From the NCBI RefSeq assembly GCF_030684315.1, contig NC_081370.1, positions 34,304,728-34,368,727 on the forward strand: DNA of 64,000 bases, given 5' to 3'. A program made the position numbers and the translations under genes. The number at the start of each line of letters is the position of its first letter. The first letter of the stretch is position 1. Of this stretch, positions 805 to 35,230 are shown one piece after another. The notes under the pieces were generated by a model. It saw nothing but the letters and a program-made list of their open reading frames with translations, ran no database searches and had not been told where the DNA came from. This stretch comes from Stegostoma tigrinum. Its lineage: Eukaryota.

Positions 805-1227
805 TTCCATGTATAATTAGTGATATCAAGACACCGTTTGAAATCAGAGATGGTGTGGAAAGCCGTCTGAATTGGAAAGTTGCTGTAGTCAGCCCAGGAG
901 TGGTGACTATTGTTACATCGATCAAAAGGAAGCACGAAAAGGATGAAAAGAAATTATTTCACTGGCAATCTAAAGCGCCACAGTCAGGACCAAGGAGAGT
1001 AACTTTTCCCCTCAAAAGTCTATCAGGCTCATGTGAGAAAGATGATTCCTTCTGTGCAGAAGAGCCAGAATTACACCGCAGTTCTGACGGGACGTTCTTC
1101 ATTCCCTGCACAATTACAATGCATCCCAATGTATCCAAGGATGATGGTGCTGTGGTAACGATCAAAGTTGAACAGGATTCTATAGAGGAAACCTTGACTA
1201 AAAGCACGGTACTAAAAGTCACAGCAG
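805..1227 (+). CDS. internal exon, degenerate C1-set-like Ig domain, copy 1
   Basis: Pyrimidine-rich acceptor tttatatcatag|TT at 804/805 and donor CAG|GTAATT at 1227/1228; 423 nt, phase 1-1, open frame. DGTFFIPCTITMHPNVSKDDGAVVTIKVEQDSI matches the C1 pattern DGTF...F-strand-V-x-H-x-S-L, but the canonical Cys/Trp are replaced. Confidence 0.8.
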
Positions 1228-1452
1228 GTAATTTTGTACATTCCAAAAATATTTGTACACATGATGGTAAAAATGTGCTGCTAGATACTCTTGATACCAG
1301 CATAAAATGCTCTTAGAAGATGTTGTTTTCTATACCTACTGTGGGTAAATATGTTGACTCTTGTATGGATTTGAGGCATGGACTTGCACTGGATACAGGG
1401 TTTAAGTGAGAATGATTTGTGTTTTTAATCAGAACCATTCCATTTAACTGAA

Positions 1453-2405
1453 GAGAGATAATGGGAACTGCAGATGCTGGAGATCCAAGATAACAAAGTG
1501 TGAAGCTGGATGAACACAGCAGGCCAAGCAGCATCTCAGGAGCACAAAAGCTGACGTTTCGGGCCTAGACCCTTCATCAGAGAGGGTTCTGGAATAAATA
1601 GGGAGAGAGAGGGAGGCAGACCGAAGATGGAGAGAAAAGAAGATAGGTGGAGAGAGTATAGGTGGGGAGGTAGGGAGGGGATAGGTCAGTCCAGGGAGAT
1701 CGGACAGGTCAAGGAGGCGGGATGAGGTTAGTAGGTGGGAAATGGAGGTGTGGCTTGAGGTGGGTGGAGGGGATAGGTGAGAGGAAGAACAGGTTAGGGA
1801 GGTGGGAATAGCTGGGCTGGTTTTGAGATGCATTGGGGGGAAGGGACGAGCTGGGCTGGTTTTGGGATGCAGTGGGGGAAGGGGAGATTTTGAAGCTTGT
1901 GAAGTCCACATTGATACCATTGGGCTGCAGGGTTCCCAAGCGGAATATGAGTTGCTGTTCCTGTAACCTTCGGGTGGCATCATTGTGGCACTGCAGGAGG
2001 CCTATGATAGACATGTCGTCTAAGGAATGGGAGGGGGAGTTAAAATGGCTCACGACTGGGGCGTGCAGTTGTTTATTGCGAACCAAGCGGAGGTGTTCTG
2101 CAAAGTGGTCCCCAAGCCTCCACTTGGTTTCCCCAATGTAGAGGAAGCCACACTGGGTACAGTGGATACAGTATACCACATTGGCACATTTGCAGGTGAA
2201 CATCTGCTTAATATGGAAAGTCATCTTGGGGCCTGGGACGAGGGTGAGGGAGGAGGTGTGGGGGAAAGTGTAGCACTTCCTGCGGTTGCAGGGGAAGGTG
2301 CTGGGTGTGGTGGGGTTGGAGGGGAGTGTGGAGCGAACAAGGGAGTCACGGAGAGAGTGGTCTCTCCGGAAGGCAGACAAGGGTGGGGATGGAAAAATGT
2401 CTTGG
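1453..2405 (-). mobile_element. 5'-truncated Penelope-like retroelement (Neptune-type; GIY-YIG endonuclease + terminal repeat)
   Basis: ORF 1709-2470 has CNRRKCY and VVYCIHC..CGFLYIGETK..LGD.F.EH (GIY-YIG with CCHH). It is absent from the paralogous intron (about 20055-20075 reads through as gaactgaaagcactttttg). Confidence 0.9.
1553..1580 (-). ncRNA. minimal hammerhead ribozyme core in PLE terminal repeat
   Basis: Minus strand reads CTGATGA-A-GGGT(CTAG)GCCC-GAAAC-GTC: conserved core, helix II, palindromic ACGT in place of helix III, GUC cleavage triplet. Confidence 0.7.
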
Positions 2406-3046
2406 ACACTTTTTGTAGCCCTTTTGCAAGTACAGGAGGCAATTAGGAGAGCACAGAGATGGGAGAACAAGAATAAGAATTTTCTGAAGTGGAGTCCCGA
2501 CCCGAAACGTCAACAGTCCTGCTCCTCTGATGCAGCTTAGCCTGCTATCTTCCTCCAGCTCCACACTGTGTTATTTCTGACTCTAGCATCTGTAGTTCTT
2601 GCTGTGTCTAAGAAAATTCTTCTCTAGTTGTGCAGATCTTTTGAATCCTCTCAAAGAAAAGTAGAACTTGCAAGAAAAACCCAGCAGATCTGACATCATC
2701 TGTGGAGATAAATCAGAGTTAATGTTTTGAGTCCAGTGACCCCTCTTCAGAATGGAATTCTCTTTTAGAACATAGAACATAGAGCATTGAACATAGAACA
2801 TAGAAAAGTACAGCACAATACAGGCCCTTCGGCCCACGATGTTGTGCCGTGGAATAATCCTTATCCAAAAATAAAGTAACCTAATCTACATTCCCCTCAA
2901 TTCACTGCTGTCCATGTGCATGTCCAGCAGTCGCTTAAATGTCACTAATGACTCCGCTTCCACGACTACCACTGGTAAACTATTCCATGCGCTCACAACT
3001 CTCTGGGTGAAGAACCTCCCTCTGACATCTCCTGTATACCTTCCTC

Positions 3047-5738
3047 CTAACACCTTAAAAGTATGACCCCTCTGGCAGTCAATCTTGCCCTGGGGAAAAG
3101 TCTCTGGCTATCAACTCTATCCATGCCTCTCATTACCTTGTACACCTTGATCAGGTCACCTCTCTTCCTCCTTCTCTCCAGAGAGAAAAGTCCGAGCTCA
3201 GTCAACCTCTCCTCATAAGACAAGCCCTCTAGCCCAGGCAGCATCCTGGTAAACCTCCTTTGCACCCTCTCCAAAGCCTCCACATCTTTCCTATAATAGG
3301 GCGACCAGATCTGGACACAATATTCCAAGTGTGGTCTCACCAGGGTTTTGTAGAGCTGCAGCATAACCTCACGGCTCTTAAACTCGATCCCCCGTTAATG
3401 AAAGCCAAAACACCATATGCTTTCTTAACAACCTTATCCACCTGGGTGGCAACTTTGAGGGAGCTACTTGAACACCAAGATCCTGCTGTTCCTCCACACT
3501 GCCGAGAATCCTGCCTTTAATCCTGTATTCAGCATTTAAGTTTGACCTTCCAAAATGCATCACTTCGCATTTATCCAGGGTGAACTCCATCTGCCATTTC
3601 TCAGCCCAGCTCTGCATTCTGTCAATGTCTCGCTGAAGCCTACAATAGCCCTCGATACTATCAACGGCACCTCCAACCTTTGTGTCATCAGCAAACATAC
3701 TAACCCACCCCTCAACCTCCTCATCCAAGTCATTTATAAAAACTACAAAGAGCAGAGGCCCAAGAACAGAGCCCTGCGGGACACCACTCAGCACTGACTT
3801 CCAGGCAGAATACTTACCATCTACAAGCATTCTCTGCCTCCTGTCAGCCAAGCAATTCTGAATCCAGACAGCCAAATCACCCTGTATCCCATACCTCCTG
3901 ACTTTATGAATGACCCTACCATGGGGAACATTATCAAATGCTTTGCTGAAGTCCATATACACCACATCCACTGCTCGACCGTTGTCAACCTGTCTCATGA
4001 CTTCCTCAAAGAACTCAACAAGATTTTTAAGGCATGACCTGCCCCTCACAAAGCCATGCTGACTCCCTTTAATCACGCTATGCTTTTCCAAATAGTCATA
4101 AATCCTATCCCTCAGAATTCTTTCCAAAACCTTGCTGACCACAGACGTAAGACTGACTGGTCTGTACTTTCCAGGGATTTCCCTATTCCCTTTCTTGAAA
4201 AGAGGAACAACATTTCTCTCCCTCGAATCTTCCGGTATGACTCCCGTGGAGAGTGAGGAAGCAAAGATCTTCACCAGCGGCTTAGCAACCTCCTTTCTCA
4301 CTTCCTGGAGCAACCTAGGATAAATCTGGTCTGGCCCTGGGGACTTATCAATCTTAATGTTTGCAAAATTTCCAGCACATCAACTTCCTCAGTCTTTATC
4401 TGTTCAAGCCTGTTTTCCTGCTCCTCAAAGTTCTCATTCACAACAAGGTCCCTTTCCTTAGTGAAAACTGAAGCAAAAAACTCATTTAGGGCTTCCCCTA
4501 TCTGCTCAGACTCCACACACAAGTTCCCTACGCTATCCCTGATCAGCCCTACCTTCTCCCTGATCATTCTCTTATTCCTCACGTGTGAGTCAAATGCCTT
4601 CGGGTTCTCCCTAATCCTTCCTTTTTTTGTGCCCCCTCCTGGCCGCCCTCAATCCACTTTTGAGCTCCTTCCAAGAAAGCCTGTAATCCTCGAAAGCTGT
4701 GGTTGACCCTTGCTTCCTCCACCTTACGTACGCTGCCTTTTTCTTTTTGACAAGAAGCACCTCTGTACCCATCGTCCAAGGTTCCTTAATCTTACCCCTT
4801 CTTACCTGTCTCAGAGGAACAAATTTATATATCACTCGCAACAACTGCTCCTTAAACAGCCTCCACATGTCTGCCGTACCCTTTCTGTGGAACAATTGCT
4901 CCCAATCTGTACTTCCCAACTCCTGTCTGATAGCGTCATAGTTTCCTTTACCCCAATTAAATATCTTTCCCTGGTAACTGCTCCTATCCCTTTCTATGGC
5001 TATGGTAAATGTGAGGCTGTTGTGGTCACTGTCGCCAAAGTGTTCTCCCACCACGAGATCTGACACCTGTCCTGGCTCATTGCCGAGCACCAAATCCAAA
5101 ATGGCCTCTCCCCTCATCGGCCTGTCCACATACTGAGTAAGGAAACCCTCCTGAACACACCTGACAAAAACGGCTCCAACCAAACCATCTGCACTAAGGA
5201 GGTTCCAATCTATATTGGGAAAGTTGAAGTCACCCATATCAACAACCCTGCTACGTTTGCACTTTCCAACAATCTGCCAGCCTATGAGTCCTTCGATCTC
5301 CCTAATGCTATTTGGGGGTCTGTAGAAAACCCCCAGTAAGGTGACTGCTCCCTTGCTGTTCCTAACTTCCACCCATACTGACTTAGTCGACAAACCTTCC
5401 TCGGCAACCTCAGCCCATACCACCTCTGAAGACGAGTCCTCATCAAAAGTTCTTTCAGCCACCATTATACTGTCCTTGACCAACAAAGCCACACCTCCCC
5501 CTCTTTTACCACCTTCCCTGACCTTAATGAAAGATCTAAACCCTGGAACCTGCAACATCCATTCCTGACCCTGCTCTATCCATGTCTTCGAAATGGCCAC
5601 AACATCGAAGTCCAAGGTACCTATCCAAGCTGTAAGCTCACCTACCTTATTCCGGATACTCCTGGCATTAAAGTAGACACACTTCAATCCAGCTTGCTGT
5701 CTGCCAGCACACTCCTGTGACAGTGAGGTCCTGACCAT
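3047..5738 (-). pseudogene. CR1 ORF2 (APE endonuclease + reverse transcriptase), frameshifted
   Basis: YFNARSI, GGGVA, YRPP, GDFN, LDLV, SDH (APE); YRPVSLTS, QHGF, DFSKAFD, GVPQGSVLGP, FADD (RT); split over several ORFs. Confidence 0.9.
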
Positions 5739-5803
5739 GTCCTCCCTACACTCATCCTCCTGTGTACTAGGACTACATCTCAGTTTCCCATCCCCCTTCT
5801 GAG

Positions 5804-6718
5804 CTAGTTTAAATCCACCCGAATAGCACTAGCAAATTTCCCACCCAGGATATTAGTGCCCCTCTGGTTCAAGTGGAGACCGTCCTGTTTGTAGAGGTCC
5901 CACCTTCCCCAAAATGAGCCCCAATTGTCCATGTACCTGAAGCCCTCCCTCCTGCACCATCCCTGCAGCCATGCGTTCAGCTGAAATCTCTCCCTGTTCT
6001 TTGCCTCACTATCACGTGGCACGGGTAACAAACCAGAGATAACCACTCTGTTTGTTCTAGCTCTCAGCTTCCACCCTAGCTCCCTGAATTCCTGCCTGAC
6101 ATCCCTATCCCTCTTTCTACCTGTGTCATTGGTGTCTATGTGGACCACGACTTGGGGCTGGTCACCCTCTCCCTTCAGGACCCCAAAGACACGATCTGAG
6201 ACATCACGGACCCTGGCACCTGGGAGGCAACACACCAACCATGAGTCTCTTTTGTTCCCGGCAAACCTTCTATCAGTCCCTCTTACTATTGAGTCCCCAA
6301 TGACTATCACTCTCTTCCTATCCCCCCTTCCCTTCTGTGCAAGAGGGACAGACTCTGTGCCAGAGACCTTCACCCTACTGCATGCCCCTGGTAAGTCCCC
6401 CCCCCCAACAGTATCCAAAATGGTATACTTGTTTTTCAGGGGAACGACCACAGGGGATCCCTGCTTTTTCCTCCTTCTAACAGTTACCCAGCTTTCTTCA
6501 CGCTTAGGAATAACTACTTCCCTGAAACTCTTGTCTATCACTGACTCTGCCTCCCGAATGATCCGAAGTTCATTCAGCTCCCACTCCAGTTCCCTAACGC
6601 GGTCTCGGAGGAGCAAGAGTTGGGTGCACTTCCTGCAGATGTATTTGGATGGGACACTTATGGCGTCCCTCACCTCATACATCATGCAGGAGGAACATTC
6701 CTCCACCCGCACTGCCAT
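5804..6718 (-). CDS. CR1 ORF1p: zinc finger/leucine zipper + SGNH esterase domain
   Basis: 304-aa ATG-initiated ORF with CxxC...CxxC, a heptad Leu stretch, VIGDSIVRG, CCLPGA and DGLHLN. Confidence 0.85.
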   Translation of the reverse strand: MAVRVEECSSCMMYEVRDAISVPSKYICRKCTQLLLLRDRVRELEWELNELRIIREAESVIDKSFREVVIPKREESWVTVRRRKKQGSPVVVPLKNKYTILDTVGGGDLPGACSRVKVSGTESVPLAQKGRGDRKRVIVIGDSIVRGTDRRFAGNKRDSWLVCCLPGARVRDVSDRVFGVLKGEGDQPQVVVHIDTNDTGRKRDRDVRQEFRELGWKLRARTNRVVISGLLPVPRDSEAKNRERFQLNAWLQGWCRREGFRYMDNWGSFWGRWDLYKQDGLHLNQRGTNILGGKFASAIRVDLN

Positions 6719-9199: not shown

Positions 9200-10141
9200 A
9201 TTTAGCTTACAAGTCTAATTGTTGAGTCTCATGATTTCTTGGAAAGGCTGTCATTTTTCCAAATGGAATTACAACTATTACTTTCAAAAGCAGGTCAGAC
9301 TTCCTCATAACTTTGAAAACTTAAATCCAATTTACATTCATGATTCATACTTTTCACTTTCAAACACTGCATTGAACCTGATCATGTTATGCTCACTATT
9401 TAATAAATGTTCACACACAATTACGGTACTAATTACAGCCAGCTCATTACTTGTCACTAAATCTAATATTCCATCCAGGGCACGTCGCTGTAGGAAGCTA
9501 TCCCAGTCAATTTCCAGAAATTTACCACCATTCTGACAGGTCCTTTTCTGACTTTCCCAATCCCCCATTAAAATTGCTGTGCTTTGCTACACATGTGACT
9601 AATCTCAGCATTTATACAATCTAGCACTTCAGAGCTACCGAAGAAGGTCTGAACACAATATCTGTAAGGTTCAGATTCTTTACTCTTTCTCAGTTCCACC
9701 GTACAATATCCACTGAATGCTCCTCCCTCAATATTCCTCTCTCCCCACTTGAAGTAATTTTGCTTCTAATCTGTAAGGGTCCTCTACATCTCTGCCATTT
9801 TCCCATCTGTCGTATAAAACTTATGACCTGGTATATTTAGTTCCTATTCCCCACCATCGTACAGCCGTGTTTTAGTTCTCTCCATTACATCAGAATCTGT
9901 ATTTCTGAACTGTGCTTGCAGCTCGGTTAATTTATTCCTTATCCGCTGTCCATTCATGTAATAAATTCTGATTTGGATGGTGCACTGTCACCTGTCCCTC
10001 AGTACTGATACTTAATTCACCTGTATATTATTTCATTCTTCCAGTTTAAGCAACAGACTTCTTGTTGTTTTGCCATTAGCTACCATTCATGAAGTAGGAT
10101 TCCTGACTGTTTCTTTACTCTCTGTCATGTTACTTGAAAGT

Positions 10142-10225
<84 letters not shown>

Positions 10226-12220: not shown

Positions 12221-12302
12221 TCCTGCACTGGTAATGTTAAAATTTGTATCAAAATCTTGTTTCCAAATTCTTCAGAGTGTCTCTCCTCCCTATGTTATTT
12301 TG

Positions 12303-12960: not shown

Positions 12961-13535
12961 CAAGGGAGCAGAAGGAGTTTGTTGGGAGCATCCTCCACCA
13001 GTAGGTCATGATAGTGAGGGACATCACCTGGAGCAGTTAAATGGAATCTCTCTGGGAAAAGTAAGGTGTAAAAAGTTCAGCAGACCGACAAAGGAATTCC
13101 TCAGTCCAGAATTAACCCCCAGGCTTCTTTGATGAAGAATGCTGCCAAAAGTTTCTTGTATACCCTCAATTTCTTCTCATGTCTGTAATAGCTTGATACC
13201 AATCACATAAAGAACCCTGCTCCTTCATCCTTGGGTCATCTGTACGTTCAAATTTCATATCGGTCTGCCTTACTAACGTCACATGCTACTTGGTCTAAAA
13301 TGATGATTACCATTTCCCCTTGTACGCAATGTGGCTCATTTTATCTCTTTAAAGTTGTGTGTAAATGTACATTATTGCAATTGATTGACAAAGTTGTATT
13401 TTGGCCTGTTGTCTATGTGTTATCTGTAAACATTAGCCAACAGCACTATTCCAATTCTTTTTACTCCATACTGAGGCTGATATTGTTTGCAGCGTAATTT
13501 GCTCAGCATTCATATAGAATCTCTAATCTGTAAAG

Positions 13536-13643
13536 GTAAAGAACACCATATGGATGCAAATATGCCAGGCACTGATCACCAAAAACAAGATCAGTTGCAA
13601 GATGAAAATAAACAGGAAGCTGAAGTTGGAATTGATCAAGAAG
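13536..13643 (+). pseudogene. acidic-repeat exon type A, splice donor lost
   Basis: 108-nt open frame GKEHHMDANMPGTDHQKQDQLQDENKQEAEVGIDQE homologous to the other repeat exons; acceptor aag, donor position reads TTAAC rather than GTAAC. Confidence 0.55.
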
Positions 13644-14172
13644 TTAACAATTAAAAATAATTTGTTCCATATAATTGGGGGATACAGAAAAGGAGTTCAG
13701 TAACATAACTCTTTTATAACCTAAAAGGAAAGACAGTCTGGTGGAGATACATTAGATTCAAACGTATACAGAAAAAGACTCTCAAATCTAGTTGTGCATG
13801 GTATTTAAGATGGTCAAGATCTTCAAGGTTCCATGAATATCTGCGAGGATTGCAACCTGAAACGCAATGGTATTTTCACTTTGTATTTCCAATGCTGATT
13901 CCAAGGCTCTCCCAACTTTCATTCCCAGCATGCCTCGTGGGGTAAATGCTGCCAATCTAATTCCCCTCCCACTTCCAGCACTGACACTTTCCAGCCTGTC
14001 AGCGGATTGGTGACAATTGGGTAAAGTTGTATTTCAGCCGACTGAGCACGTGCTATCCGTGAACATTAGTTCACAGCACCGTTATTGTTCCTTCTTCTCC
14101 ATACTCAGCTTTATGTTGTTGATTTTGTTATTGGCTTTGCATTAATGTGGAAATTTTTAGAAATCTTCTCAG

Positions 14173-14280
14173 GTGAAGAAAGCCAGACGGAGCAGGCAAA
14201 GCAAATCATTGGTCATCTCAACCAAGACCACTTGCAAAATGAAAACAAGCAGGTAGCTGAAGTTGGAATGAGTCAAAAAG
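14173..14280 (+). CDS. acidic 36-aa repeat exon type B
   Basis: tcttctcag|GT...AAAG|gtaac; 108 nt, phase 1-1; GEESQTEQAKQIIGHLNQDHLQNENKQVAEVGMSQK. Confidence 0.65.
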
Positions 14281-15708
14281 GTAACAGTTTCAGGAAAGTT
14301 AAAATATTTTGTAGAATACAATTCAGAGATGCAGAAAAGGTGCAAATAACATGATTCGATTTATAACTCAGAGGGAAGGACAATCTGCGAGGAGCACTTT
14401 AAATTCAAATTGTTTTGAATCATTTCGAAAAAGTCTCAAGTGGAGCAAGTAGAACAGAAGAGAAAGCCAGCAGAGGAATATAGGGCAAGATCCAAGGTCA
14501 CAAATGTCATAGAATAGATCCAGCGTCGACATTAATAGGTGAACATGGAATAGTTCTGCTGGAAGTAAATCAGACACATTTACGGGTGTGGGAGGTGGCG
14601 GTGAGTGACGTGAAGATGGGAAATTGCTGGGTGCGAAGCTGAGGAGACAGAACAGAGAATAAGAGTTCATGGTCAGAATAAAGCTGAAAGAATTACGGAT
14701 GCTGGAACTCACAAGCAAAAACAGAAATTAATGAAAGAACACAACAGGTCAAGCAGCATTTGTCAAGAGAAATCAGCATTCATGTTTCGGGCCCAATGAG
14801 CCGTTCTCGGGACAAGTGGTAACCATGAAAGATTTGTTTTTTATTCAGTATCTCAGATGGGGAAAGGGTGTAAGGAGCAAACTGAGGGTAGAGACAGAGC
14901 CCAAAAACCGAGAAGATAGTTGGAAAGACAAAGGACTGGATAACCATCAGCCTGGGAGGAAGACTAGCTGCTGACGGGGACTATTAGTGACTAACCAAGA
15001 GTTGTATATTAAAGCAGACCGTGTGATAAAATAGCCTGGTGTGTGGAGGTTGGTGTAAGGACCTGGGATAAGGAGCCTCAAGCCCTAAAATTATTGAGCT
15101 TGACATTGAGTTGAAAAAGTTGCAGTGTTCCCATGTAGTAAACGTAGTACTCTTCTTCCAGCCTGCACTGAGCTCCACTGGAGTACTACAGCAAGCCTGA
15201 CATAGAGAAAATGGCCAGGAGCAGGGCGATGTGAGGAAGTGGCAAGCAACTGGAACCACAGGGTGTCGTTTTTTTAGCAGACAGAATGTAGATAGTCTGC
15301 AAAGTAGTGTGACGCAGAAGAGGAGATCAAAGTTTACATGCCTCTCTTCTGCTGATCTATCTGTCAGGAATGTTTTCTCTGTGAGGTTGCCTGTGAGGAC
15401 TTATAGCTAGAAGTGCTGTGGTACCTTTTATGGGCAGATAGTGCATTCTTTTGAGAGCTTAGCAATTTCTTGTGACAGCTAGATGCAAATTTCTCAGATG
15501 GTGGTTTGCTCTCACACTGATTTTCAAAAACTCTCTCTTTATACACCTTGGATGACGTATCAATTTTCTTACAATAGCATTGGACCAATAGCACTGTGAA
15601 CATGACCAACAGCACTATTGTTGTTCTTTCTCCTCCATAGCAAGGTTGATATTGTTTACAGTGTTATTTGCTTTGCATTAATGTAGAAATTCTGAAATGT
15701 CTACACAG

Positions 15709-15816
15709 GTGAAGAAAGCCAGACAGATCAGGGAGAGCAAGTCACTGATCACCTCAACCAAGAACACTTGCAAAATGAAAATCAGCAGGAAGCTGAAGTT
15801 GGAAATAGTCAAAAAG
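15709..15816 (+). CDS. acidic 36-aa repeat exon type C
   Basis: ctacacag|GT...AAAG|gtaat; 108 nt, phase 1-1; GEESQTDQGEQVTDHLNQEHLQNENQQEAEVGNSQK. Confidence 0.65.
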
Positions 15817-20789: not shown

Positions 20790-21660
20790 TTATAAGACTG
20801 TAAGATGTATGAGCACTTGTAGGCAATTCAGACCATCAAGTCTGCTCTGCCGTTTGATCTTGGCTGATGTGTTTCTCAACGTCATTATTTTGCCATTTCT
20901 CCGCAACCTTTGATCAATGAAGAATCTATGTGTTTCTGTCTTAAATCCAAAGAATGATTTGGCTTCCACAGGCCTCTGCAGCAATAAACATGCCACAAAT
21001 TAACCACCCTCAGGTTAAAGAAATTCCTCCTCATCTCATTTCTGAAGGGTTTTTTCCCTTCATTCTGAGGCTGTGCCTTCTGGCTGTCATCTCCCCTACT
21101 CTGGAAAGATCTTTTCCATATCCACTCTGTCCACACCTCTCAGAATTCTATAAGCTTCAATCACATTTCCTCTCATTCTTCTAAACCTCATTGAGTACAG
21201 ACCCCAAGCTGTGAACCACTCTTCATGTGACATGCTTTTCATCCCCAGAATCATTGTTACAAACCACCAGTGGGCCTCCTCCAATGTTAGTACATCCTTG
21301 CTTTGATGCATGGACCCAACCTGCTCTGAATATTCCCAAACCAGTCTGACCAGGGCTCTATTTCACCTCAGCAGTACATCCTTGCTGTTGTATTCTAACC
21401 CTTTGGAAATGATTTCTAACATTATATTTGCCTTCCAAATCACCAGCTCCACTTGCCGATTTATCTCAAGACAACTGCCTTTGTGCTTCAGATTTCTGAA
21501 GCCTTTCTCCATTTAGGCAATAATTTATACCTTTATTCTTACTACCAAAGTGCATAACCTCACACTTTTCCGCATTGTGTTCAATCTGCCACTGCTTCGC
21601 CCACTACCCCGGCCTGTCCAAGTCCTTCTGCAGCCTCCTTGCATCCTCCACACTGTCTGC
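20790..21660 (-). mobile_element. CR1 3' fragment (duplicate at about 32400-33355)
   Basis: RRMRGN.IE.YRIL.G.DRVD...IFP and RRNFF..RVVNLW motifs. Confidence 0.75.
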
Positions 21661-22796
21661 ATGCACAGCATGTAACAAACCAGACACGATAAAATTCGGA
21701 CAAAACAAAGCCAAGGTAATCCTGAAACACGGACACCGAAAGCTGGAGAAATCCATAAATCATCCATGCTTTTGTCACATACAGGGTTGGCTATTCTTGT
21801 GCACGTTTATCCAGCATCCAATCTTTCACGCTTTTGCAATGTAAGCTCATTCAAAATCTGAACCTATTGTAACTCTCACCAATATCTGTTTGCCCATTAC
21901 CCCAGGGCTTACATTTGGCCCCGAGCCTGGTAATTTTAAAATCTTCCTTCAAAAAGATGGTTCTAAATGCTTCCATAGTGTCACTCCTCGCTACAGTATT
22001 AACTGTTACCCCACCCTCCACCAATCTTGGAATCTTACAAAAACCTATCAAATTGCTCTGTCACTGATGGTTGCACCTTGAGCTGTCGAAGCCTAAATTT
22101 TCTACATGTTCCTCTTTACCTGCAACTCTCATTCTGAACATGTTACTTAGTGGCCTCATTTATCACAACTTAATGTGATGGTCCCCGAAGCAGCAGGTGA
22201 TGATTGTGTTGGAGAGCGCTGAGCAAGGGAGCTCAGTAGTTTGTTGGGGCATCCTCCACCAGCAGGCCATGCCAGTGAGGGACATCACCTGGAGCAGTTA
22301 AATGGAATCTCTCTGGGAAAAATAAGGTGTAAAAACATCAGCAGACAGACAAAGGAATTCCTCAGCCCAGAATTAACCCCCAGGCTTCTTTGATGGAGAA
22401 TGCTGCCAATAGTTTCTTGTATACCCTCAATTTCTTCTCATGTCTGTAATAGCTTGATACCAATCACATAAAGAACCCTGCTCCTTCATCCTTGGGTCAT
22501 CTGTACGTTCAAATTTCATATCGGTCTGCCTTACTAACGTCACATGCTACTTGGTCTCAAATGATGATTACCATTTCCCCTTGTACGCAATGTGGTTCAT
22601 TTTATCTCTTTAAAGTTGTGTGTAAATGTACATTATTGCAATTGATTGACAAAGTTGTATTTTGGCCTGTTGTCTATGTGTTATCTGTAAACATTAGCCA
22701 ACGGCACAATTCCAATTCTTTTTACTCCATACTGAGGCTGATATTGTTTGCAGCGTAATTTGCTCAGCATTCAAATAGAATCTCTAATCTGTAAAG

Positions 22797-22904
22797 GTAA
22801 AGAACACCATATGGATGCAAATATGCCAGGCACTGATCACCAAAAACAAGATCAGTTGCAAGATGAAAATAACCAGGAAGCTGGAGTTGGAATTGATCAA
22901 GAAG
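22797..22904 (+). pseudogene. acidic-repeat exon type A copy 2, donor lost
   Basis: Copy of 13536-13643 with the same TT in place of GT. Confidence 0.55.
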
Positions 22905-23433
22905 TTAACAATTAAAAATAATTTGTTCCATATAATTGGGGGATACAGAAAAGGAGTTCAGTAACATAACTCTTTTATAACCTAAAAGGAAAGACAGTCT
23001 GGTGGAGATACATTAGATTCAAACGTATACAGAAAAAGACTCTCAAATCTAGTTGTGCATGGTATTTAAGATGGTCAAGATCTTCAAGGTTCCATGAATA
23101 TCTGCGAGGATTGCAACCTGAAACGCAATGGTATTTTCACTTTGTATTTCCAATGCTGATTCCAAGGCTCTCCCAACTTTCATTCCCAGCATGCCTCGTG
23201 GGGTAAATGCTGCCAATCTAATTCCCCTCCCACTTCCAGCACTGACACTTTCCAGCCTGTCAGCGGATTGGTGACAATTGGGTAAAGTTGTATTTCAGCC
23301 GACTGAGCACGTGCTATCCGTGAACATTAGTTCACAGCACCGTTATTGTTCCTTCTTCTCCATACTCAGCTTTATGTTGTTGATTTTGTTATTGGCTTTG
23401 CATTAATGTGGAAATTTTTAGAAATCTTCTCAG

Positions 23434-23541
23434 GTGAAGAAAGCCAGACGGAGCAGGCAAAGCAAATCATTGGTCATCTCAACCAAGACCACTTGCAAAA
23501 TGAAAACAAGCAGGTAGCTGAAGTTGGAATGAGTCAAAAAG
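23434..23541 (+). CDS. acidic repeat exon type B copy 2
   Basis: cag|GT...AAAG|gtaac, 108 nt, same peptide as 14173. Confidence 0.65.
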
Positions 23542-24194
23542 GTAACAATTTCAGGAAAGTTAAAATATTTTGTAGAATACAATTCAGAGATGCAGAAAAG
23601 GTGCACAATAACATGATTCGATTGAAAACTCAAAGGGAAGGACAATCTGCGAGGAGCACTTTAAATTCAAATTGTTTCGAATCATATTGAAAAAGTCTCA
23701 AGTGGAGCAAGTGGAACGGAAGAGAAAGCCAGCAGAGGAAGATAGCGCAAGATGCAAGGTCACAAATGTCACAGAATAGATCCAGCGTCGACATTAAGAG
23801 TTGAACATGGAATAGTTCTGCTGGAAGTAAATCAGACACATTTACGGGTGTGGGAGGTGGCGGTGAGTGACGTGAAGATGGGAAATTGCTGGGTGCAAAG
23901 CTGAGGAGACAGAACAGAGAATAGAGTTCATGGTCAGAATAAAACTGCAAGAATTCCGGATGCTGGAAATCACAAGCAAAAACAGAAATTAATGGAAGAA
24001 CACAAAAGGTCAAGCAGCATTTGTCAAGAGAAATCAGCATTCATGTTTCGGGTCCAATGAGCCGTTCTCGGGACAAATGGTAACAAGGAAAGATTTGTTT
24101 TTTATGCAGAATCTCGGATGCGGAAAGGGTGTAAGGAGCAAACGGAAGGTAGAGACAGAGCCCAGAAACAGAGAAGATAGTTGGAAAGACAAAG

Positions 24195-25480: not shown

Positions 25481-27314
25481 GTAATAATCTCAGGAAAGTT
25501 AAAATATATTGTGTAATATAATTCAGAGATGCAGAAAAGGAGCACAATAACAGGATTTGATTTATAACTCAGAGGGAAGGACAATCTGCTGGGAGCACTT
25601 TAAATTCAAATTATTTCTAATCATATCGAAAAAGTAACAAGTGGAGCAAGTGGAACAGAAGAGAAAGCCAGCAGAGGAATATAGGGCAAGATCCAAGGTC
25701 ACAAATGTCACAGAATAGATCCAGCATCGACATTAATAGGTGAACATGGATAAGATCTGCTGGAAGTAAATCAGACACATTTACGGGGGTGGGAGGTGGT
25801 GGTGAGTGACGTGAAGATGGGAAATTGCTGGGTGCGAAGCTGAGGAGACAGAACAGAGAATAGAGCTCATGGTCAGAATAAAAACTGAAATAATTACAGA
25901 TGCTGGAAATCACAAGCAAAAACAGAAATTAATGGAAGAACAGAAAAGGTCAAGCAGCATTTGTCAAGAGAAATCAGCATTCATGTTTCGGGTCCAATGA
26001 GCCGTTCTCGGGACAAATGGTAACAAGGAAAGATTTGTTTTTTATGCAGAATCTCAGATGCGGAAAGGGTGTAAGGAGCAAACGGAAGGTAGAGACAGAG
26101 CCCAGAAACAGAGAAGATAGTTGGAAAGACAAAGTGATAATAGGAACTGCAGATGCTGGAGAATCCAAGAGAACAAAGTGTGGAGCTGGAGCTGTGCCTC
26201 TCTGATGAAGGGTCTAGGCCTGAAACGTCAGCTTTTGTGCTCCTGAGATGCTGCTTGGCCTGCTGTGTTCATCCAGCTCCACACTTTGTTATCTTGGAAA
26301 GAGAAAGGACTGGATAACAATCAGACTGGGAGGAAGACTAGCTGCTGACGGGGACCATTACTGACTAACCAAGAGTTGTATATTAAAGCAGACCGTGTGA
26401 TAAAATAGCCTGGTGTGTGGAGGTTGGTGTAAGGGCCTGGGATAAGGAGCCTCAAGCCCTAAAATTATTGAGCTTGACATTGAGTTGAAAAAGTTGCAGT
26501 GTTCCCATGTAGTAAACGTAGTACTCTTCTTCCAACTTGCACTGAGCTCCACTGGAGTACCACAGCAGGCCTGAGATAAGGACAATGGCCAGGAGCAGGG
26601 CGTTGTGAGGAAGTGGCAAGCAACTGGAACCACAGGGTGTCGTTTTTTTTTTTGCAGACAGAATGTAGATAGTCTGCAAAGTAGTGTTACGCAGTAGAGA
26701 GGTTAAATGAAAGAAAATCCCTGATATTCACTTTACAAGTAATAAGTAACAGTTTATTTATTTAATTCTGACAGTGAACAAGTTAACAGAATTATGAAGA
26801 AGCCAAACAATTCCCCCTTAACTGCGAGCTAATCCCAAACTGAACTAAATTCTACTGGTGTGCTGTTCAAATAAACACAAATCCCACTTATATAAACCTA
26901 AGTCATAAGAAAATAAATTAAATCTTTGTCTTTCAAAGTTTACATGCCTCTCTTCTGCTGATCTATCTGTCAGAAATGTTTTCTCTGTGAGGTTGCCTGT
27001 GAGGACTTATAGCTAGAAGTGCTGTGGTACCTTTTATGGGCAGATAGTGCATTCTTTTGAGAGCTTAGCAATTTCTTGTGACAGCTAGATGCAAATTTCT
27101 CAGATGGTGGTTTGCTCTCACACTGATTTTCAAAAACTCTCTCTTTATACACCTTGGATGACGTATCAATTTTCTTACAATAGCATTGGTCCAATAGCAC
27201 TGTGAACATGACCAACAGCACTATTGTTGTTCTTCCTCCTCCATAGCAAGGTTGATATTGTTTACAGTGTTATTTGCTTTGCATTAATGTAGAAATTCTG
27301 AAATGTCTACACAG

Positions 27315-27422
27315 GTGAAGAAAGCCAGACAGATCAGGGAGAGCAAGTCACTGATCACCTCAACCAAGAACACTTGCAAAATGAAAATCAGCAGGAAGCT
27401 GAAGTTGGAAATAGTCAAAAAG
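27315..27422 (+). CDS. acidic repeat exon type C copy 3
   Basis: cag|GT...AAAG|gtaat, 108 nt, matches 15709. Confidence 0.65.
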
Positions 27423-30400
27423 GTAATAATGTCAGGAAAGTTTTAGTATTTTGTGTAATATAATTCAGAGATGCAGAAAAGGTGCACAATAACATGATTC
27501 AATTTATAACGTAGAGTAAAGGACAGTCTGAGTGAAGCACTTGAAGTTCAAATTGATTCAAATTATATTGAAAAGTAACAAGTGGAGCAAGTGGAACAGA
27601 AGAGAAAGCCAGGAGAGGATTAAAGGGCAAGATCCAAGGTTACCAATGTCACAGAATAGTTCCAGAATATCCGTTAATAGTAGAATATGGATAAGTTCTG
27701 TTGGAAGTTAATTAGACACATTTACTGGGGTGGGAGGTGGCGGTGAGTGACATGGAGATGGAAAGTGGGTGGGTGCGAAGCTGAGGAGACAGAACAGAGA
27801 ATAGAGTTCATAGTCAAAATAAAAACTGAAATAATTACAGATGCTGGATATCACAAGCAAAAACAGAAATTAATGGAAGAACTCAACAGGTCCAGCAGTG
27901 TCTGTCAAGAGAAATCAGAATTCATGTTTCTGATCCAGTGACCCTTCCTTGGGACTAATGGTAGCCAGGAAAGGGTTGTTTTTTTTTATTGCAGAAGATA
28001 GAATGGGGAAAGGGTGTAAGGAGCAAACGAAAGGTGGAGTCACATCCCAAAGACAGAGAAGAACAGTTGGAAAGACAAAGGACTGGATAGCGATCAGCCT
28101 GGGAGAAAGACTAGCTGCTGATGGGGACTATTAGTGGCGAACAAAGAGTTGTTTATTAAAGCAGACCATGTGATACAATGGCCTGGTGTGTGGAGGTTGG
28201 TGTAAGGGCATGGGATAAGGTGCCTGAAATCCTATAATTATTGAACAGGTGTTACACTTCCTGCTGCTGCCGGGGTTTGGGGTGTGTGCTGTCAATGAAG
28301 GAGAAGTCGACATGGTGTCTCGAAGGGAATGGTCCTCGATGAACACTTATAGAGGAGGGGAGGGGTACATGCGCGGGGTCGAGGCATCCTACTCGAGGTG
28401 GCGGACGTGGCAGCCTATGGGTGTAGATCCTGCTGGGATGGTAGTTGAGGACAAGGGGAAGCCTATCACTGTTGTAGGAGGGAAGAGAGGGAGTGAGAAC
28501 TGAGATGTGGGAGATGGGTCAGATCCTGACAGTGTGGCCTGTCGGTTATGTTGCTGGGGACTCCTTGGCTGACAAAGAAGGTGGACATTTTGAAGTCCTC
28601 CTTGTCAAAGTTGGAATCATCAGAACAGGTGCAGTGGAGACAGAAAAACTGGGAAAATGGAATAGTGTCTTTCCAGGAAGCGCGCTGTGAGGATTATAGT
28701 CAAGGTAACTGTGGCATTCTGCTCATTTCCACTTGATATTGGTGGCCAATTTATCCGCAGAAATGGAAACGGAGCTGCCGAGTCAGAGATGGACGAGGTA
28801 AAAGTGAGAGTGGGTGGAAATTGAAAGAGAAATTGAGCAATCTTTCCATTTACAGGAGAGAAAGGGAGGCAGCACCAATACCCAATGACTTCATGGTTTG
28901 AACTTGTTTCATTCAATGTTGAATCCAAAAGGCTGTAAAGTGCTTAAAACGAAAATGAGGTGCTATTCCTTCGGCTTGCGTTGGGCTTCACGTGAACATC
29001 ACTGCAGACCAAGATCAGAAATGAGCAGAAAGGCAAGAGGCAGATTGAGCAGAGGGAATCCAGAAACATAGCAGACAGTCATTGGGCAAGGAGACATGGC
29101 TTTGAAAGTGAATTTTGGTTACTACGTGATTAGATACCAGATGGGAAATGGAAAGCAATGAAGGTGAACAGGATGGAAGAGACAAAGTGTTGTCACGGGA
29201 GCCTTGGGAAGTTCTTGAAGTACATCTTGTACATGGTGCAACCTGCTTTCACTCTTGGTTGAGGGAGTTTAAGGTTAAGCTCATGGATAAGGCGACGATT
29301 GAGTGGCTGCTTTGTCCTGGATGTTGTCATGGTTCCTGAGTGCTGTTAGAATTACACTCATTCAGGAAATTGGAGACTATCCTATCATACTCCTGACCTC
29401 TGCCTTGATAATGGTGAACCAGCTCTGGGGAGTCAGGAGAGGAATTAATCTATTTCAGATAATCCGATTCTCAGCCTGTGACTAAGTCTTGGTTCAGTCC
29501 AATTTCTGGCCACAGGTTAGCCTGACAATTTTGACAGTGGAGGATTCAGCTGATGTCATTAGATGTCGAGATAAGAAGGTTACATCGCCCGTTATTGGAG
29601 GTGGAAGTTGATATTTGTGAGGTGCCAATCTTGCTGCTACGTACAGGCGTAGTCTGCTTCAGTATCACAGAGTCCTGAATGGAACAGAACATTGAGCAAA
29701 CATCAACAAACGTTCTCACTTCTGACTTTATTATGGGGCCAGGTCATTGGTGAGGCAACTGAAGGTGGTCACATGTAGGACACTACCTTGACAACAGCCT
29801 GCAGTGATGTCCTAAAGCTGAAATGATTCACCTCCAAGAAGCACCTAGTCTCCTTTGTGCTGGGTATGACTCCAACCAGTGGAGGTTTGCTCTCCAATTC
29901 ACGATGAGTCCATACTTGGTAGGGGTCCTTCATACCGGCCTTGGTTAAATGCTGCCATGTTGTCAACACAGTCTCTCTCACATTACCTCTTGAGTTCACT
30001 TCCTTTCTCCATGCTTGATGAAGGTCGTATTGAGGTCAGAAGCTGAATGGCCTTAGCAAAAACAGAATATCAATGAGCTAGTTATTGAGCGGTAGAGTAT
30101 TGGTCATTACCTCCATCACTTTGCAGATGATAGATGATGCAATTCTGAATGGACACAACAGCAATAATAGTAAGCAATCAAGTTAAATAGCAGTTCAGTG
30201 AGTCAAACTCTGCTCACTTACCTGTTCCTCTTCAGCAGGAATCCGTTGTTCACATCTGTGGAAGAGCAATGATTTCTCAATGAGGAATTAATGTTTGGAT
30301 TGATTTTAATTCTTCGCTCATTTTGACTGTCATCTGGCCTCATTATGATTAATATGCTGGCGAGCATCAGGGTCTCCCATTATAAAACTGTAATAGCACA

Positions 30401-31028
30401 CCTTATGTTCTTACGGTTCACAGCAATGATCAAAGTGGCTGTCAGGACCTTGACATTTCAGAGTATGCAGCTGACCAATGAGAAAAGGGGACATGATATG
30501 CCTTCCTGTGACAGTCCTGTTTTGAGGAGAACTGCCAGCATGGAAATATGGCTCTACATTTTGAGGGGCTTCGAGTGGAATCACACCTCAGAAATGTGGA
30601 GCTTCTTTCTTATATAAAAGCAAAGGAGCCAGACCTATTGTACTTGCTAATGCTCAGAATATCCTGCCCATTAAAACACGGCACTTGGTGCGTATCTACA
30701 CAGTGATTTCCATGGGGTTGACATTCAATGAACTTGCAGTTCACTAAACCTTCCAGGACAAAGTGCCTTTGCTTCTAAACTTCCCACAAGTGGGTCGTGT
30801 TAAAGTATTCACTCAAAGTGCCCAGAACAGTGGTTGCTCAGCTTACCAGTGGAAGTTCAGTAGATTTAGGCATAACATTAAATTGTACAAACTGAGAATC
30901 AAACAATCTTGTTCAAATTATACAATAAATGGTGCGTTCAGTTCATAATTTGTGTCTAAACAAGAAAGCAAAGCAGAGAGCTTGGACAAATGTTTATATC
31001 ACATTTATGTTTTATTTTTATATCATAG

Positions 31029-31451
31029 TTCTGCATATAATTAGTGATATCAAGACACCGTTTGAAATCAGAGATGGTGTGGAAAGCCGTCTGAATTGGA
31101 AAGTTGCTGTAGTCAGCCCAGGAGTGGTGACTATTGTTACATCGATCAAAAGGAAGCACGAAAAGGATGAAAAGAAATTATTTCACTGGCAATCTGAAGC
31201 GCCACAGTCAGGACCAAGGAGAGTAACTTCTCCCCTCAAAAGTCTATCAGGCTCATGTGAGAAAGATGATTCCTTCTGTGCAGAAGAGCCAGAATTACAC
31301 CGCAGTTCTGACGGGACGTTCTTCATTCCCTGCACAATTACAATGCATCCCAATGTATCCAAGGATGATGGTGCTGTGGTAACGATCAAAGTTGAACAGG
31401 ATTCCATTGGCAAAGTCCTCACTAAACAAATACAAGTAAAAGTCACAGCAG
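31029..31451 (+). CDS. internal exon, degenerate C1-set-like Ig domain, copy 3
   Basis: Same splice sites and 423-nt open frame; differs from copy 2 near the end (IQVKVT vs IELKVT). Confidence 0.8.
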
Positions 31452-32704
31452 GTAATTTTGTACATTCCAGAAATAATTGTACACATGATGGTAAAAATGT
31501 GCTGCTATATATTCTTGTTGCCAGCATAAGCTTATCTGAAAATGTTATTTCCCGTACGTACTGTGATTAGATACAATGAACCGTGCACCAGTTTGAGGTG
31601 TGGAACCATAGATGTGGGATTTAGGTCAGAGATCATTTGCTTTTTTACTCAGAACTATGTCATTGAACTGAAAGCACTTTTTGCAGCCGTTTTGCAAGTG
31701 CAGGAAGTGATTGGGAAAGCAGGGAGATTGGAGAACAAGAATAAAACAAGTTCTCCAGTAGTGCAGATCTTTGGAATCCTCTCGAACAAAAATGTAAATA
31801 ACTGAAAAATCTCAGCAGATGTGACAGCGTCTATGCAGAGAAATCAGAGATAACAATTCAGGTCCTGTGACCCTTCTTCAGAATGGAGCCCTCTAATGAG
31901 GGCTGAGATGGGGCAGAATTTGTTAGGTGCATCCATGAGGGTTTCTTGAGAAACAAGATCTAAATAGTCCAACGAGGGAAGGAGCTGCACTAGATCTTGT
32001 TTTGGAGATTGATTCTGGCCTGGTGTTCGAAGTTTTAGTGGGAGAACATTTTGGGAACAGTGATCATAATTCCATAATATTTTTCAGATAGTTATGGATA
32101 AGGATAAGACTGATTCTTAGCTCATAGTGCGATATTGGAGAAGACCATAAGTCGATATTCCACTTGATGAATTGACATGCTCAGAAACATCAGTAGTCTT
32201 CATTGAGGATGAATTATCTTTACTGTATGGAATCCTCTCTCCATTTCTGCTAGGTTCTGAGGGAACGCTCTCTATCTTTACTCCGATACAGTTTTACTAC
32301 ACATTTCTGAAGATTCCTTTTGTTGTCCCATTACTGCCATAGATCCCCCGTTTCATTTCAAGCAATTAGATTTAGTACATCTTTTGCATCGTTTTCTTAT
32401 AAGACTGTAAGATGTATGAGCACTTGTAGGCAATTCAGACCATCAAGTCTGCTCTGCCGTTTGATCTTGGCTGATGTGTTTCTCAACGTCATTATTTTGC
32501 CATTTCTCCGCAACCTTTGATCAATGAAGAATCTATGTGTTTCTGTCTTAAATCCAAAGAATGATTTGGCTTCCACAGGCCTCTGCAGCAATAAACATGC
32601 CACAAATTAACCACCCTCAGGTTAAAGAAATTCCTCCTCATCTCATTTCTGAAGGGTTTTTTCCCTTCATTCTGAGGCTGTGCCTTCTGGCTGTCATCTC
32701 CCCT

Positions 32705-32878
32705 ACTCTGGAAAGATCTTTTCCATATCCACTCTGTCCACACCTCTCAGAATTCTATAAGCTTCAATCACATTTCCTCTCATTCTTCTAAACTCTGGAA
32801 AGATCTTTTCCATATCCACTCTGTCCACACCTCTCAGAATTCTATAAGCTTCAATCACATTTCCTCTCATTCTTCTAA
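32705..32878. repeat. 87-bp perfect tandem duplication
   Basis: 32705-32791 repeated at 32792-32878; single copy in the paralogue at about 21098-21184. Confidence 0.9.
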
Positions 32879-34484
32879 ACCTCATTGAGTACAGACCCCA
32901 AGCTGTGAACCACTCTTCATATGACATGCTTTTCATCTGCAGAATCATTGTTACAAACCACCAGTGGGCCTCCTCCAATGTTAGTACATCCTTGCTTTGA
33001 TGCATGGACCCAACCTGCTCTGAATATTCCAAAATCAGTCTGACCAGGGCTCTATTTCACCTCAGCAGTACATCCTTGCTGTTGTATTCTAACCCTTTGG
33101 AAATGATTTCTAACATTATATTTGCCTTCCAAATCACTAGCTCCACTTGCCAATTTATCTCAAGATAATTGCCTTTGTGCTTCAGATTTCTGAAGCCTTT
33201 CTCCATTTAGGCAATAATTTATACCTTTATTCTTACTACCAAAGTGCATAACCTCACACTTTTCCGCATTGTGTTCAATCTGCCACTGCTTCGCCCACTA
33301 CCCCGGCCTGTCCAAGTCCTTCTGCAGCCTCCTTGCATCCTCCACACTGTCTGCATGCACAGCATGTAACCAACCTGACACGATAAAATTCAGACAAAAC
33401 AAAGCCAAGGTAATCCTGAAACACAGACACCGAAAGCTGGAGAAATCCATAAATCATCCATTCTTTTGTCACATACAGGGTTGGCTATTCTTGTGCACGT
33501 TTATCCAGCATCCAATCTTTCACGCTTTTGCAATGTAAGCTCATTCAAAATCTGAACCTATTGTCACTCTCACCAATATCTGTTTGCCCATTACCCCACG
33601 GCTTACATTTGGCCCCATGCATGTCAATTTTAAAACCTGTTTCTAAATCCTTCCATAGTGTCACTCCCCCCTGTTCATTTCACATCCCTACCCTCCTCCA
33701 TTCTTGGAATCTTACAAAAACCTATCAAGTTGCTCTGTCACTGATGGTTGTATATTCAGCTGTCGAAGACTAAAAGTTTCAACATGTTCCTCTTTAACTC
33801 CAACCCTCATTCTGAACTGTTATTGAACTGTCTCATTTCCCACATCTGTATGTAATGGGCCACATAGCAGCAGGTGATGATGGTGCTGGAGCACTGAGCC
33901 AGGGAGCTAAGTAGTTTGCTGGGACATCCTCCACCAGCAGGTCATGACAGTGAGGGACCGCACCTGGAGCAGTTAAATGGAATCTGTCTGGGAAAAGTAA
34001 GGTGTAAAAAGATCAGCAGACAGACAAATGAATTCCTTCCTCCAGAATTTTCCCACAGGTTTCCTTTGATGTAAAATGCTACAAATAGTTCCTTGTATAC
34101 CCTTAAGTTCTTTTCATATTTGTAAAGCATGATACCAATGACATAAGGAACCACATTTCTTCATCCTTGGGTTATCTGTATGTTCAAATTTCATACCACT
34201 TACAATAGTTTGCTGTACTAATGTCATGTGCTGCTTGGTCTCAAATGATGATTACCATTTCCCCTTGTACATTAACTTGGCTCATTTCATCACTTTAAAG
34301 TTGTGTATAAATGTACATTATTGCAATTGATTGACAAATTTGTGTTTTTGCCTGCTGTGTCTGTGTTATCTACAAACATTAGCCGATGTCACTATTGCTC
34401 ATCCTTTTTCTCCATCCTGAGGTTGATATTGTTTACAGTGTTATTTGCTTTACATTGATGTAGAATCTCAAGAAATCTGTAAAG

Positions 34485-34580
34485 ACCAAGAAAGCCATAT
34501 GCCTGAGACCATGCAAGGCACTGATCACCACAACCAAGACGATTGTAACCAGGAAGCTGAAACTGGCATTAATCAAGAAG
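34485..34580 (+). CDS. acidic repeat exon type A' (96 nt)
   Basis: aag|AC...GAAG|gtaat; DQESHMPETMQGTDHHNQDDCNQEAETGINQE; 12-nt in-frame deletion relative to the others; alternative in-frame acceptor at 34464. Confidence 0.6.
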
Positions 34581-35122
34581 GTAATAAACTCAGGACAATT
34601 AAATATGTTTTGTGTAATATACTTGAGAGATACAGGAAAGGAGTACAGTAACATGACTCTTTTATAACCTAAAAGGAAGGACAGTCTAGTGGAGATACGT
34701 TACGTTCCAATTAATTTAAATTTATTTCGAAAATGTCTCTCAAATCTCGTTATGCATGGTATTTAAGATCTTCAAGATCTTCATCATTCCAAGACTGTCT
34801 GCGAGGAATGTAACCTGAAATCCCATGTAATTTTCCCTTTGATTTCCAATGCTCATTTCAAAACTCTCCCAACTTTCATTCCCAGCATACCTAGTGGGGT
34901 TTATGGCACCAATGTAATTCCCCACCCACTTCTGGCATTGAAATCTTCCAGCCTGACAGCAGATTGGCTCCAACTGGGTAAAAGTTGTATTTTGGCCGAC
35001 TGAATATGTGCTGTCTGTGAACATTAACCAATGTTGCTGTTCCTTCTTCTCCATACTGAGGTTTATGTTGTTGCAGTGTTATTTACTTTGCATTAATGTT
35101 GAAATGTGGCAAATCTGCGCAG

Positions 35123-35230
35123 ATGATGAAAACCAGCCAGAGGAGACAATGGAAGTTCCTGATCTCCTCAGTCAAGAATGGTTGCAAGGTGAAAATAAGC
35201 AGGAAGCTGAAGCTGGAATTAATCAAGCAG
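35123..35230 (+). CDS. acidic repeat exon type B'
   Basis: ctgcgcag|AT...GCAG|gtaaa; 108 nt; DDENQPEETMEVPDLLSQEWLQGENKQEAEAGINQA. Confidence 0.65.

Follow-up and report, generated by a model that had tools for sequence, protein, structure and literature searches.

We analysed a window of 64,000 nt from the zebra shark, Stegostoma tigrinum (NC_081370.1, 34,304,728–34,368,727; all coordinates are numbered along this whole stretch), which carries an array of immunoglobulin (Ig)-like and acidic exons on the forward strand. The stretch from 805 to 41424 is the 3′ half of zebra-shark LOC125459499, a gene with public but unnamed models. When 1.84 billion proteins were queried with the first Ig-like exon (Ig1), 31 matches were returned, among them XP_059508048.1 (LOC125459499 isoform X2, S. 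tigrinum), which was 97% identical to the query and 100% identical over its first copy; isoform X1 came from an additional search. Isoforms X1 (900 amino acids, aa) and X2 (759 aa) run through the window exons at 100% identity. Their N-terminal part consists of a leader, V-set and C1-set domains recognised by Pfam, and one transmembrane (TM) helix; a single TM-like segment was found at residues 238–256, followed by the basic sequence YKKSK, with no second helix. An earlier note, made from the letters of this DNA, had placed the array in the C-terminal part of a B7-H6-cluster protein, which agrees with the segments that precede these exons in both isoforms.

Exons were placed by tblastn of exon peptides against the window, together with a splice-site and frame check; each exon served as a separate query, and all spliced forms referred to here are RefSeq proteins as deposited. 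Twelve exons were located, three of them Ig-like (423 nt each) and nine short and acidic. All twelve have a length that is a multiple of three, are open in the phase-1 frame and are preceded by AG, and a GT donor follows ten of them, the exceptions being acidic exons A1 and A2, where TT is found. Each Ig-like exon encodes one domain and is bounded by AG and GT in phase 1-1, as is typical of exons of the Ig superfamily (IgSF). No hydrophobic exon of the TM type occurs among the twelve.

The array begins with Ig1 (805–1227), an exon of 141 codons in phase 1-1 that encodes residues 290–431 of both X1 and X2 with a 100% match and, like the other two Ig-like exons, a post-TM domain of predicted Ig fold. 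It is followed by A1 (13536–13643), which is open, ends at a TT donor, occurs in neither isoform and is probably a dead pseudo-exon; by acidic exon B1 (14173–14280), with intact AG and GT and likewise in neither isoform; and by acidic linker exon C1 (15709–15816; 36 codons), present in both. The second Ig-like exon, Ig2 (19423–19845), is found in X1 only. A2 (22797–22904), again with a TT donor and probably dead, and B2 (23434–23541), with intact sites, are used in neither isoform, and linker exons C2 (25373–25480) and C3 (27315–27422) are used in both, as are Ig3 (31029–31451) and acidic exon A′, which in its RefSeq form has 39 codons (117 nt; 34464–34580). An in-frame alternative acceptor at 34485 would give a 96-nt form of A′ (34485–34580). 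Acidic exon B′ (35123–35230) matches the RefSeq proteins at 100%, and their C-terminus was located in a last coding exon at 41408–41424, which encodes DNPSQ and then a stop. The chain of X1 is thus Ig1, C1, Ig2, C2, C3, Ig3, A′ (from the acceptor at 34464), B′ and the exon at 41408–41424, and X2 is the same chain without Ig2. NPSQ is the C-terminus common to the zebra shark, horn shark and Heptranchias models, and the Mustelus model ends in NPS; this end may be a conserved terminal motif.

The order of twelve phase-1 exons given in the earlier note, Ig-(A)-B-C-Ig-(A)-B-C-C-Ig-A′-B′, was reproduced by tblastn and the splice-site and frame check, as was its description of the exons as open, mutually in frame and free of a hydrophobic TM exon; its brackets around the A exons fit the TT that replaces the GT donor at A1 and A2. 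Two points had to be corrected. The array does not end at 35230, as the last coding exon lies at 41408–41424, and the twelve exons do not all belong to one annotated product: RefSeq uses eight of them plus the tiny last exon, and A1, A2, B1 and B2 are in neither isoform. B1 and B2 are 100% identical to each other, have intact AG and GT and may be cassette exons that RefSeq does not record.

Comparison of the window with itself showed that the exon pattern consists of nested tandem duplications of exon-plus-intron blocks. The youngest unit, containing one C exon and one Ig exon, is present on the forward strand at 15327–21186 and again at 26933–32793, the two copies being 99.5% identical. A block at 12961–14933 recurs at 22224–24194 with 97% identity over the whole 2-kb unit, and older duplicate copies in the window are 83–93% identical. 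The cores of Ig1 and Ig2 (exon positions 8–376) differ at 2 of 369 positions, with flanking introns that are 86–90% identical, and for the identical exons B1 and B2 an ungapped count over 100-nt flanks gives 88%. Because the Ig1 and Ig2 cores are nearly identical while their introns are not, exon conservation exceeds what chance would give, and this much better preservation of exon cores indicates selection or conversion acting on the exons.

These features bear on whether the array is a real coding unit, since it could instead consist of decaying duplicates, or be a gene-model or assembly artefact in which open phase-1 exons were strung together by a predictor without forming one protein. The junctions come from predicted gene models, the donors of A1 and A2 are dead, neither isoform includes B1 or B2, and the 5.9-kb units are 99.5% identical, all of which would fit such an origin. 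Against it, exon cores are much better kept than introns, all used exons are open with AG and GT, and the same order recurs in nine cartilaginous-fish species, with the NPSQ end in several sharks and with models that come partly from outside NCBI; the domain copies, moreover, form a 100/100 clade with clustering by species. We regard this explanation as very unlikely. Four sequencing runs of one study, none recorded as RNA, contain about 0.9 of the words sampled from a 6-kb stretch that is mostly intron, and because of this they look like DNA.

The identity of the 141-aa unit encoded by the Ig-like exons is not apparent from plain sequence comparison. Pfam searches with each exon gave no family at E values up to 10, and the family has no Pfam model; a sequence profile of the domain family compared with the PDB found no Ig chain, with chance matches only (E above 0.04). 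A single-sequence AlphaFold2 (AF2) model of the unit was unusable, with a predicted local distance difference test score (pLDDT) of 32. With a 16-row alignment, whose query columns were checked to contain nothing but this domain, in copies from nine cartilaginous-fish species, AF2 gave a pLDDT of 90.8 and a predicted template modelling score of 0.85; a first alignment had been set aside for folding to avoid bias, canonical C1 domains of more distant relatives (the multi-C1 subfamily described below) having been drawn into its query columns. The model has strands at 19–27, 33–40, 48–54, 66–68, 82–91, 97–105, 116–123 and 130–135. The leading Foldseek matches were nearly all Ig domains, headed by MPZL1, MPZ and nanobodies. 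A VIA structural search gave Z scores of 11.0 to MPZ, T-cell receptor V domains and sodium-channel beta subunits over 110–115 residues, and of 10.0–10.3 to the C1 domain of HLA-DP beta2 and the I-set domain of titin over 96–97 residues (titin Z1Z2, Z 10.3 over 97 residues). Profile comparison by hhalign with the family's own ectodomains gave 94% to C1 and 98% to V, and an iterated search starting from the ectodomain C1 reaches the post-TM 141-aa domains.

On the strength of the AF2 model, the structural matches and the profile comparison, the unit is predicted to be an Ig sandwich with a V-like extra C′–C″ hairpin and C1-like E–F–G motifs. The hallmark columns read W, T and I in the window domains, as opposed to C, W and C in the ectodomain C1 of the same proteins, so that both disulfide cysteines and the C-strand tryptophan have been lost from the zebra-shark post-TM domains; the earlier note had rightly called them disulfide-less. 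Features of the C1 set include the DGTF motif of the E strand and an F-strand histidine that is kept in Callorhinchus and other copies, and a turn of the D-x-G-x-Y-x-C type is also present. As to subtype, the extra strands at 48–54 and 66–68 and the alignment of V chains over 110–115 residues, as opposed to 96 for C1, would fit V, but the Z scores for the two sets lie within 1 of each other. The earlier assignment of an Ig fold is therefore supported by structure prediction and profile comparison while remaining invisible to Pfam and plain sequence search, and its label "C1-like" holds for the E–F–G motifs but not for the strand complement, which is nine-stranded and V-like. The best conserved residues, LFHW at 50–53, D79, F82, A84 and P87, all lie in the extra part of the fold.

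Could the unit be some other beta-rich fold, with the Ig call over-read? The missing Pfam match, a family profile that finds no Ig chain in the PDB, the pLDDT of 32 from a single sequence and the differing hhalign registers of the second half to C1 and V would all be expected in that case. They are answered by the pLDDT of 90.8 obtained from family members alone, by structural matches that at the top are all Ig domains over 96–115 residues with Z of 10–11, by the iterated search that arrives at these domains from the ectodomain C1, and by the D-x-G-x-Y-x-C-type turn and the DGTF motif, and we consider a different fold extremely improbable. A V register for the second half, which displaces it by one strand, in which Cys101 would be the F-strand cysteine and to which the stronger hhalign match to V had pointed, was rejected, as structural alignments use 130–135 as strand G and the D-x-G turn at 112–118 fits the E–F corner. 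Cys101, on the E strand, is nearly invariant across the family alignment and Cys76 is frequent, although the canonical pair is gone. A predicted homodimer of two domain copies scored 0.00, a value that weighs neither for nor against self-association.

The same 141-aa unit was found in 1 to 8 copies behind the TM segment of cartilaginous-fish relatives, in Heterodontus (7 near-identical copies), Scyliorhinus torazame, Mustelus asterias, Heptranchias, Mobula, Hemitrygon and Callorhinchus (3 to 8 copies). Nine cartilaginous-fish species share the order of a TM segment followed by domains and linkers, and their gene models come partly from beyond NCBI (one UniProt entry and one GenBank submitter's model). 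In a tree, all elasmobranch copies fell into one clade supported at 100/100, with the zebra-shark copies together and clustering by species; because copies cluster in this way, the arrays appear to have grown, or to have been homogenised, within lineages. The suggestion in the earlier note that length is tunable by splicing and copy number is in line with this range of copies and with the skipping of Ig2 in X2.

Weaker but significant matches (E 1e-5 to 6e-8 in 1.8 billion proteins) were obtained to the domain that comes first after the TM segment in a second subfamily, here called multi-C1. Its members include Heterodontus XP_067902345.1, models from Cetorhinus and Narcine, coelacanth LOC102345720 (XP_014340773.1), Rana temporaria LOC120917008 and LOC120916956, the latter matched over part of the domain only, and alligator proteins such as XP_019332669.2, which NCBI names NCR3LG1. 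Like the zebra-shark protein, the alligator, coelacanth, Rana and shark or ray multi-C1 models have V, C1 and TM segments followed by a disulfide-less first domain of about 120–140 aa. In the multi-C1 relatives canonical C1-set domains then follow, without acidic linker exons, whereas the zebra-shark subfamily repeats the first-domain type only and interleaves it with acidic linkers. Models from Bombina and Dendropsophus contain long C1-like arrays that were matched only by the last third of the window domain, and no TM segment was found in the Bombina model. The first domains of horn shark and coelacanth group together in the tree at 96/92, which suggests that the arrangement is older than the split between cartilaginous and bony vertebrates. 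The architecture had been called unusual in the earlier note, and it is indeed not known from any studied B7 protein; it is, however, not peculiar to sharks, being predicted in coelacanth, frogs and alligator as well.

Taken together, we propose, with a probability of roughly 70%, that this region codes for a cytoplasmic tail built in modules, with Ig-fold beads strung on acidic stretches that are probably disordered. The protein would be a type I membrane protein in which a B7-H6-like ectodomain, made of a V and a C1 domain, and one TM segment are followed by the products of phase-1 cassette exons of two kinds, one for the very divergent 141-aa Ig-fold domain and one for 36-aa acidic linkers that are likely to be disordered. 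Recent tandem duplication of exon blocks would have lengthened this array and exon skipping would trim it, and in isoforms that contain the TM segment it would lie in the cytosol.

The cytosolic location is inferred indirectly, from the position of the TM segment, the loss of the disulfide and the pattern of N-glycosylation sequons. The array lies C-terminal of the stop-transfer helix (238–256) with its basic YKKSK. Ectodomain C1 domains have C-W-C at the hallmark positions in every case, whereas nearly all post-TM domains of the window's subfamily show W-x-(I/V/L/F); the B-strand cysteine persists in two Callorhinchus copies, and the canonical pair is missing from every copy of this subfamily after the TM segment. 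Post-TM domains of the multi-C1 relatives often lack just one cysteine (C-W-V, L-W-C, Y-W-C and others), a pattern that is not expected where a disulfide forms and that favours the cytosol. Across 18 proteins, 63 sequons were observed before the TM segment against 31 expected from composition, and 74 after it against 68 expected; as the repeats are not independent, these counts are to be read as a trend and not as a statistical test. An acidic (D/E)-R-S-L-L sequence stands before each domain in horn shark and before the first domain in zebra shark (residues ~275–289); it resembles a dileucine-type sorting signal, which would make sense only in the cytosol.

Several observations weigh against this proposal. 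The predicted Heterodontus isoform X3 (XP_067902349.1) lacks exactly the 31-aa TM exon, the predicted isoform X2 of Rana temporaria LOC120917008 lacks exactly the 37-aa TM exon, the catshark model S. torazame GCB65803.1 has no TM segment and runs from C1 straight into the next domain, and C-W-C is retained in many of the domains behind the TM segment of the multi-C1 relatives. TM-skipped models combined with retained C-W-C mean that the same domains could be secreted. X1 and X2 are Gnomon predictions, and their junctions rest on these models and on recurrence across species; the exons for the leader, V, C1 and TM segments, located upstream of the window, were read as part of the RefSeq proteins. 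The 99.5% identical duplicate could in principle be an assembly duplication.

The first group of these observations belongs to a reading that places the main work of the array outside the cell. On this view, loss of the TM exon by skipping would yield a secreted chain of V, C1 and post-TM domains, and the membrane form would be a minor product or by-product. The exact loss of the TM exon in both Heterodontus X3 and Rana X2 speaks for it, as do the catshark model, which comes from a different annotation, and the many relatives' domains that keep both cysteines and the tryptophan. It is harder to reconcile with the presence of the TM segment in both zebra-shark isoforms, with the complete absence of the canonical disulfide from the window's subfamily, with sequons that are two-fold enriched before the TM segment and not enriched after it, and with single-cysteine losses that are common after the TM segment and absent before it. 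We judge it unlikely that the array acts mainly in this way; a secreted form that passes through the endoplasmic reticulum is nevertheless a serious rival, and both forms may exist. In a shark and a frog alike, the membrane anchor itself looks like a phase-1 cassette that can be skipped.

If the array is a cytoplasmic tail, it might serve as a multivalent docking or scaffold tail for cytosolic partners. The LFHW and DDSF-x-AE-x-PE motifs, both in the extra C′-to-D part of the fold, are the proposed binding face, so that the tail would present multiple copies of one conserved surface and couple an NKp30-ligand-like ectodomain to partners in the cytosol. This docking function is held with much less confidence than the cytoplasmic tail itself. 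A broader history is possible but doubtful as a whole: a cytosolic Ig array ancestral to cartilaginous and bony vertebrates, retained from sharks to crocodilians and lost in mammals, may act as an intracellular sensor or scaffold. Under that scenario the array would control display or clustering of the ligand from inside, as the butyrophilin B30.2 domain does, omission of the TM exon would redirect these domains to the secretory pathway, and the shark subfamily would have lost its disulfide in adapting to folding in the cytosol.

To our knowledge, no studied B7-family ligand carries folded Ig domains behind its membrane anchor, and we know of no described class of type I IgSF receptors with Ig-fold domains in the cytoplasmic tail. 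A literature search found no account of Ig domains behind the TM segment of B7-H6 homologues, although an earlier description is possible. One parallel is with the butyrophilins (e.g. BTN3A1), which combine a B7-related V–C ectodomain, a single TM segment and small in-frame cytoplasmic exons with a cytosolic beta-sandwich domain that senses an intracellular ligand. Their cytosolic domain is B30.2/SPRY, that of the zebra shark Ig, and no sequence relation between the two was found, though no search was aimed at one. That Ig folds can work in the cytosol without a disulfide is familiar from the I-set domains of titin, obscurin and MyBP-C; these are soluble sarcomeric proteins without a TM segment or ectodomain, and they have no detectable sequence relation to the zebra-shark domain. 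Nurse-shark UrIg2 (PMC12227049) is likewise an elasmobranch IgSF gene enlarged by recent duplication of near-identical adjacent domain exons, with acidic stretches. Its repeated C1 domains, unlike the zebra-shark array, are canonical, extracellular and placed before the TM segment (PMC12227049).

Should the proposed topology be true, the array would join butyrophilin B30.2 as a second example of a folded intracellular module in a B7-type ligand; this example would appear to be ancient, with a range that extends from sharks and chimaeras to coelacanth, frogs and alligator, and would offer a testable handle on the role of the poorly understood B7-H6 tail. The domain also illustrates how far an Ig domain can drift, as it is still predicted to fold with neither the cysteine pair nor the tryptophan, and the locus shows clearly how the length of a protein is tuned when exon blocks are duplicated and exons skipped.

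The ectodomain of the zebra-shark protein matched NCR3LG1 with 78.5 bits (E 3e-21) in a single stretch, the best match per V–C unit among solved structures; the better V–C unit of 4-Ig CD276 scored 45.6 bits, 2-Ig CD276 42.3 and TAPBPR 56. Among solved structures the ectodomain is thus closest to human B7-H6, and "B7-H6-like" is a fair description on the basis of match scores to solved B7 proteins. The tail of human B7-H6 has about 170 aa and no known Ig domain, and is described as gag-like, with motifs of the immunoreceptor tyrosine-based inhibitory motif (ITIM), SH2 and SH3 types; the zebra-shark tail differs in its three predicted Ig-fold domains and acidic linkers. Human NCR3LG1/B7-H6 (PDB 3PV6, 4ZSO and 6YJP) is likewise a type I membrane protein, its ectodomain consisting of one V and one C1 domain. 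Downstream of the array, a V exon in phase 1-1 at 55299–55631 on the forward strand belongs to the next B7-H6/B7-H3-like gene of the cluster; its best matches were CD276 and NCR3LG1, consistent with the statement of the earlier note that a B7-H6-like gene follows.

The window also contains several repeats and candidate mobile elements. A LINE-like (long interspersed nuclear element) stretch at 3047–6718 on the minus strand lies in the intron after Ig1, with open reading frames that, judged by eye, resemble a reverse transcriptase (3378–4313), an endonuclease (4611–5738) and an ORF1 (5804–6718). Three repeat copies at 1709–2470 (minus), 44814–45641 (plus) and 59151–59534 (minus) are 82–91% identical by blastn and contain a GIY-YIG-like motif (LYIGET), as in Penelope-like elements. 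A CA/TG dinucleotide microsatellite at about 10125–10200 was visible as a CV run in the translation of an open reading frame. The intron that follows the next gene's V exon contains a retroelement-like stretch with a YIDD reverse-transcriptase motif (59796–60485, minus strand) and, within it, an inverted repeat of about 610 nt whose arms, 60864–61475 and 61627–62237, are 88.7% identical.

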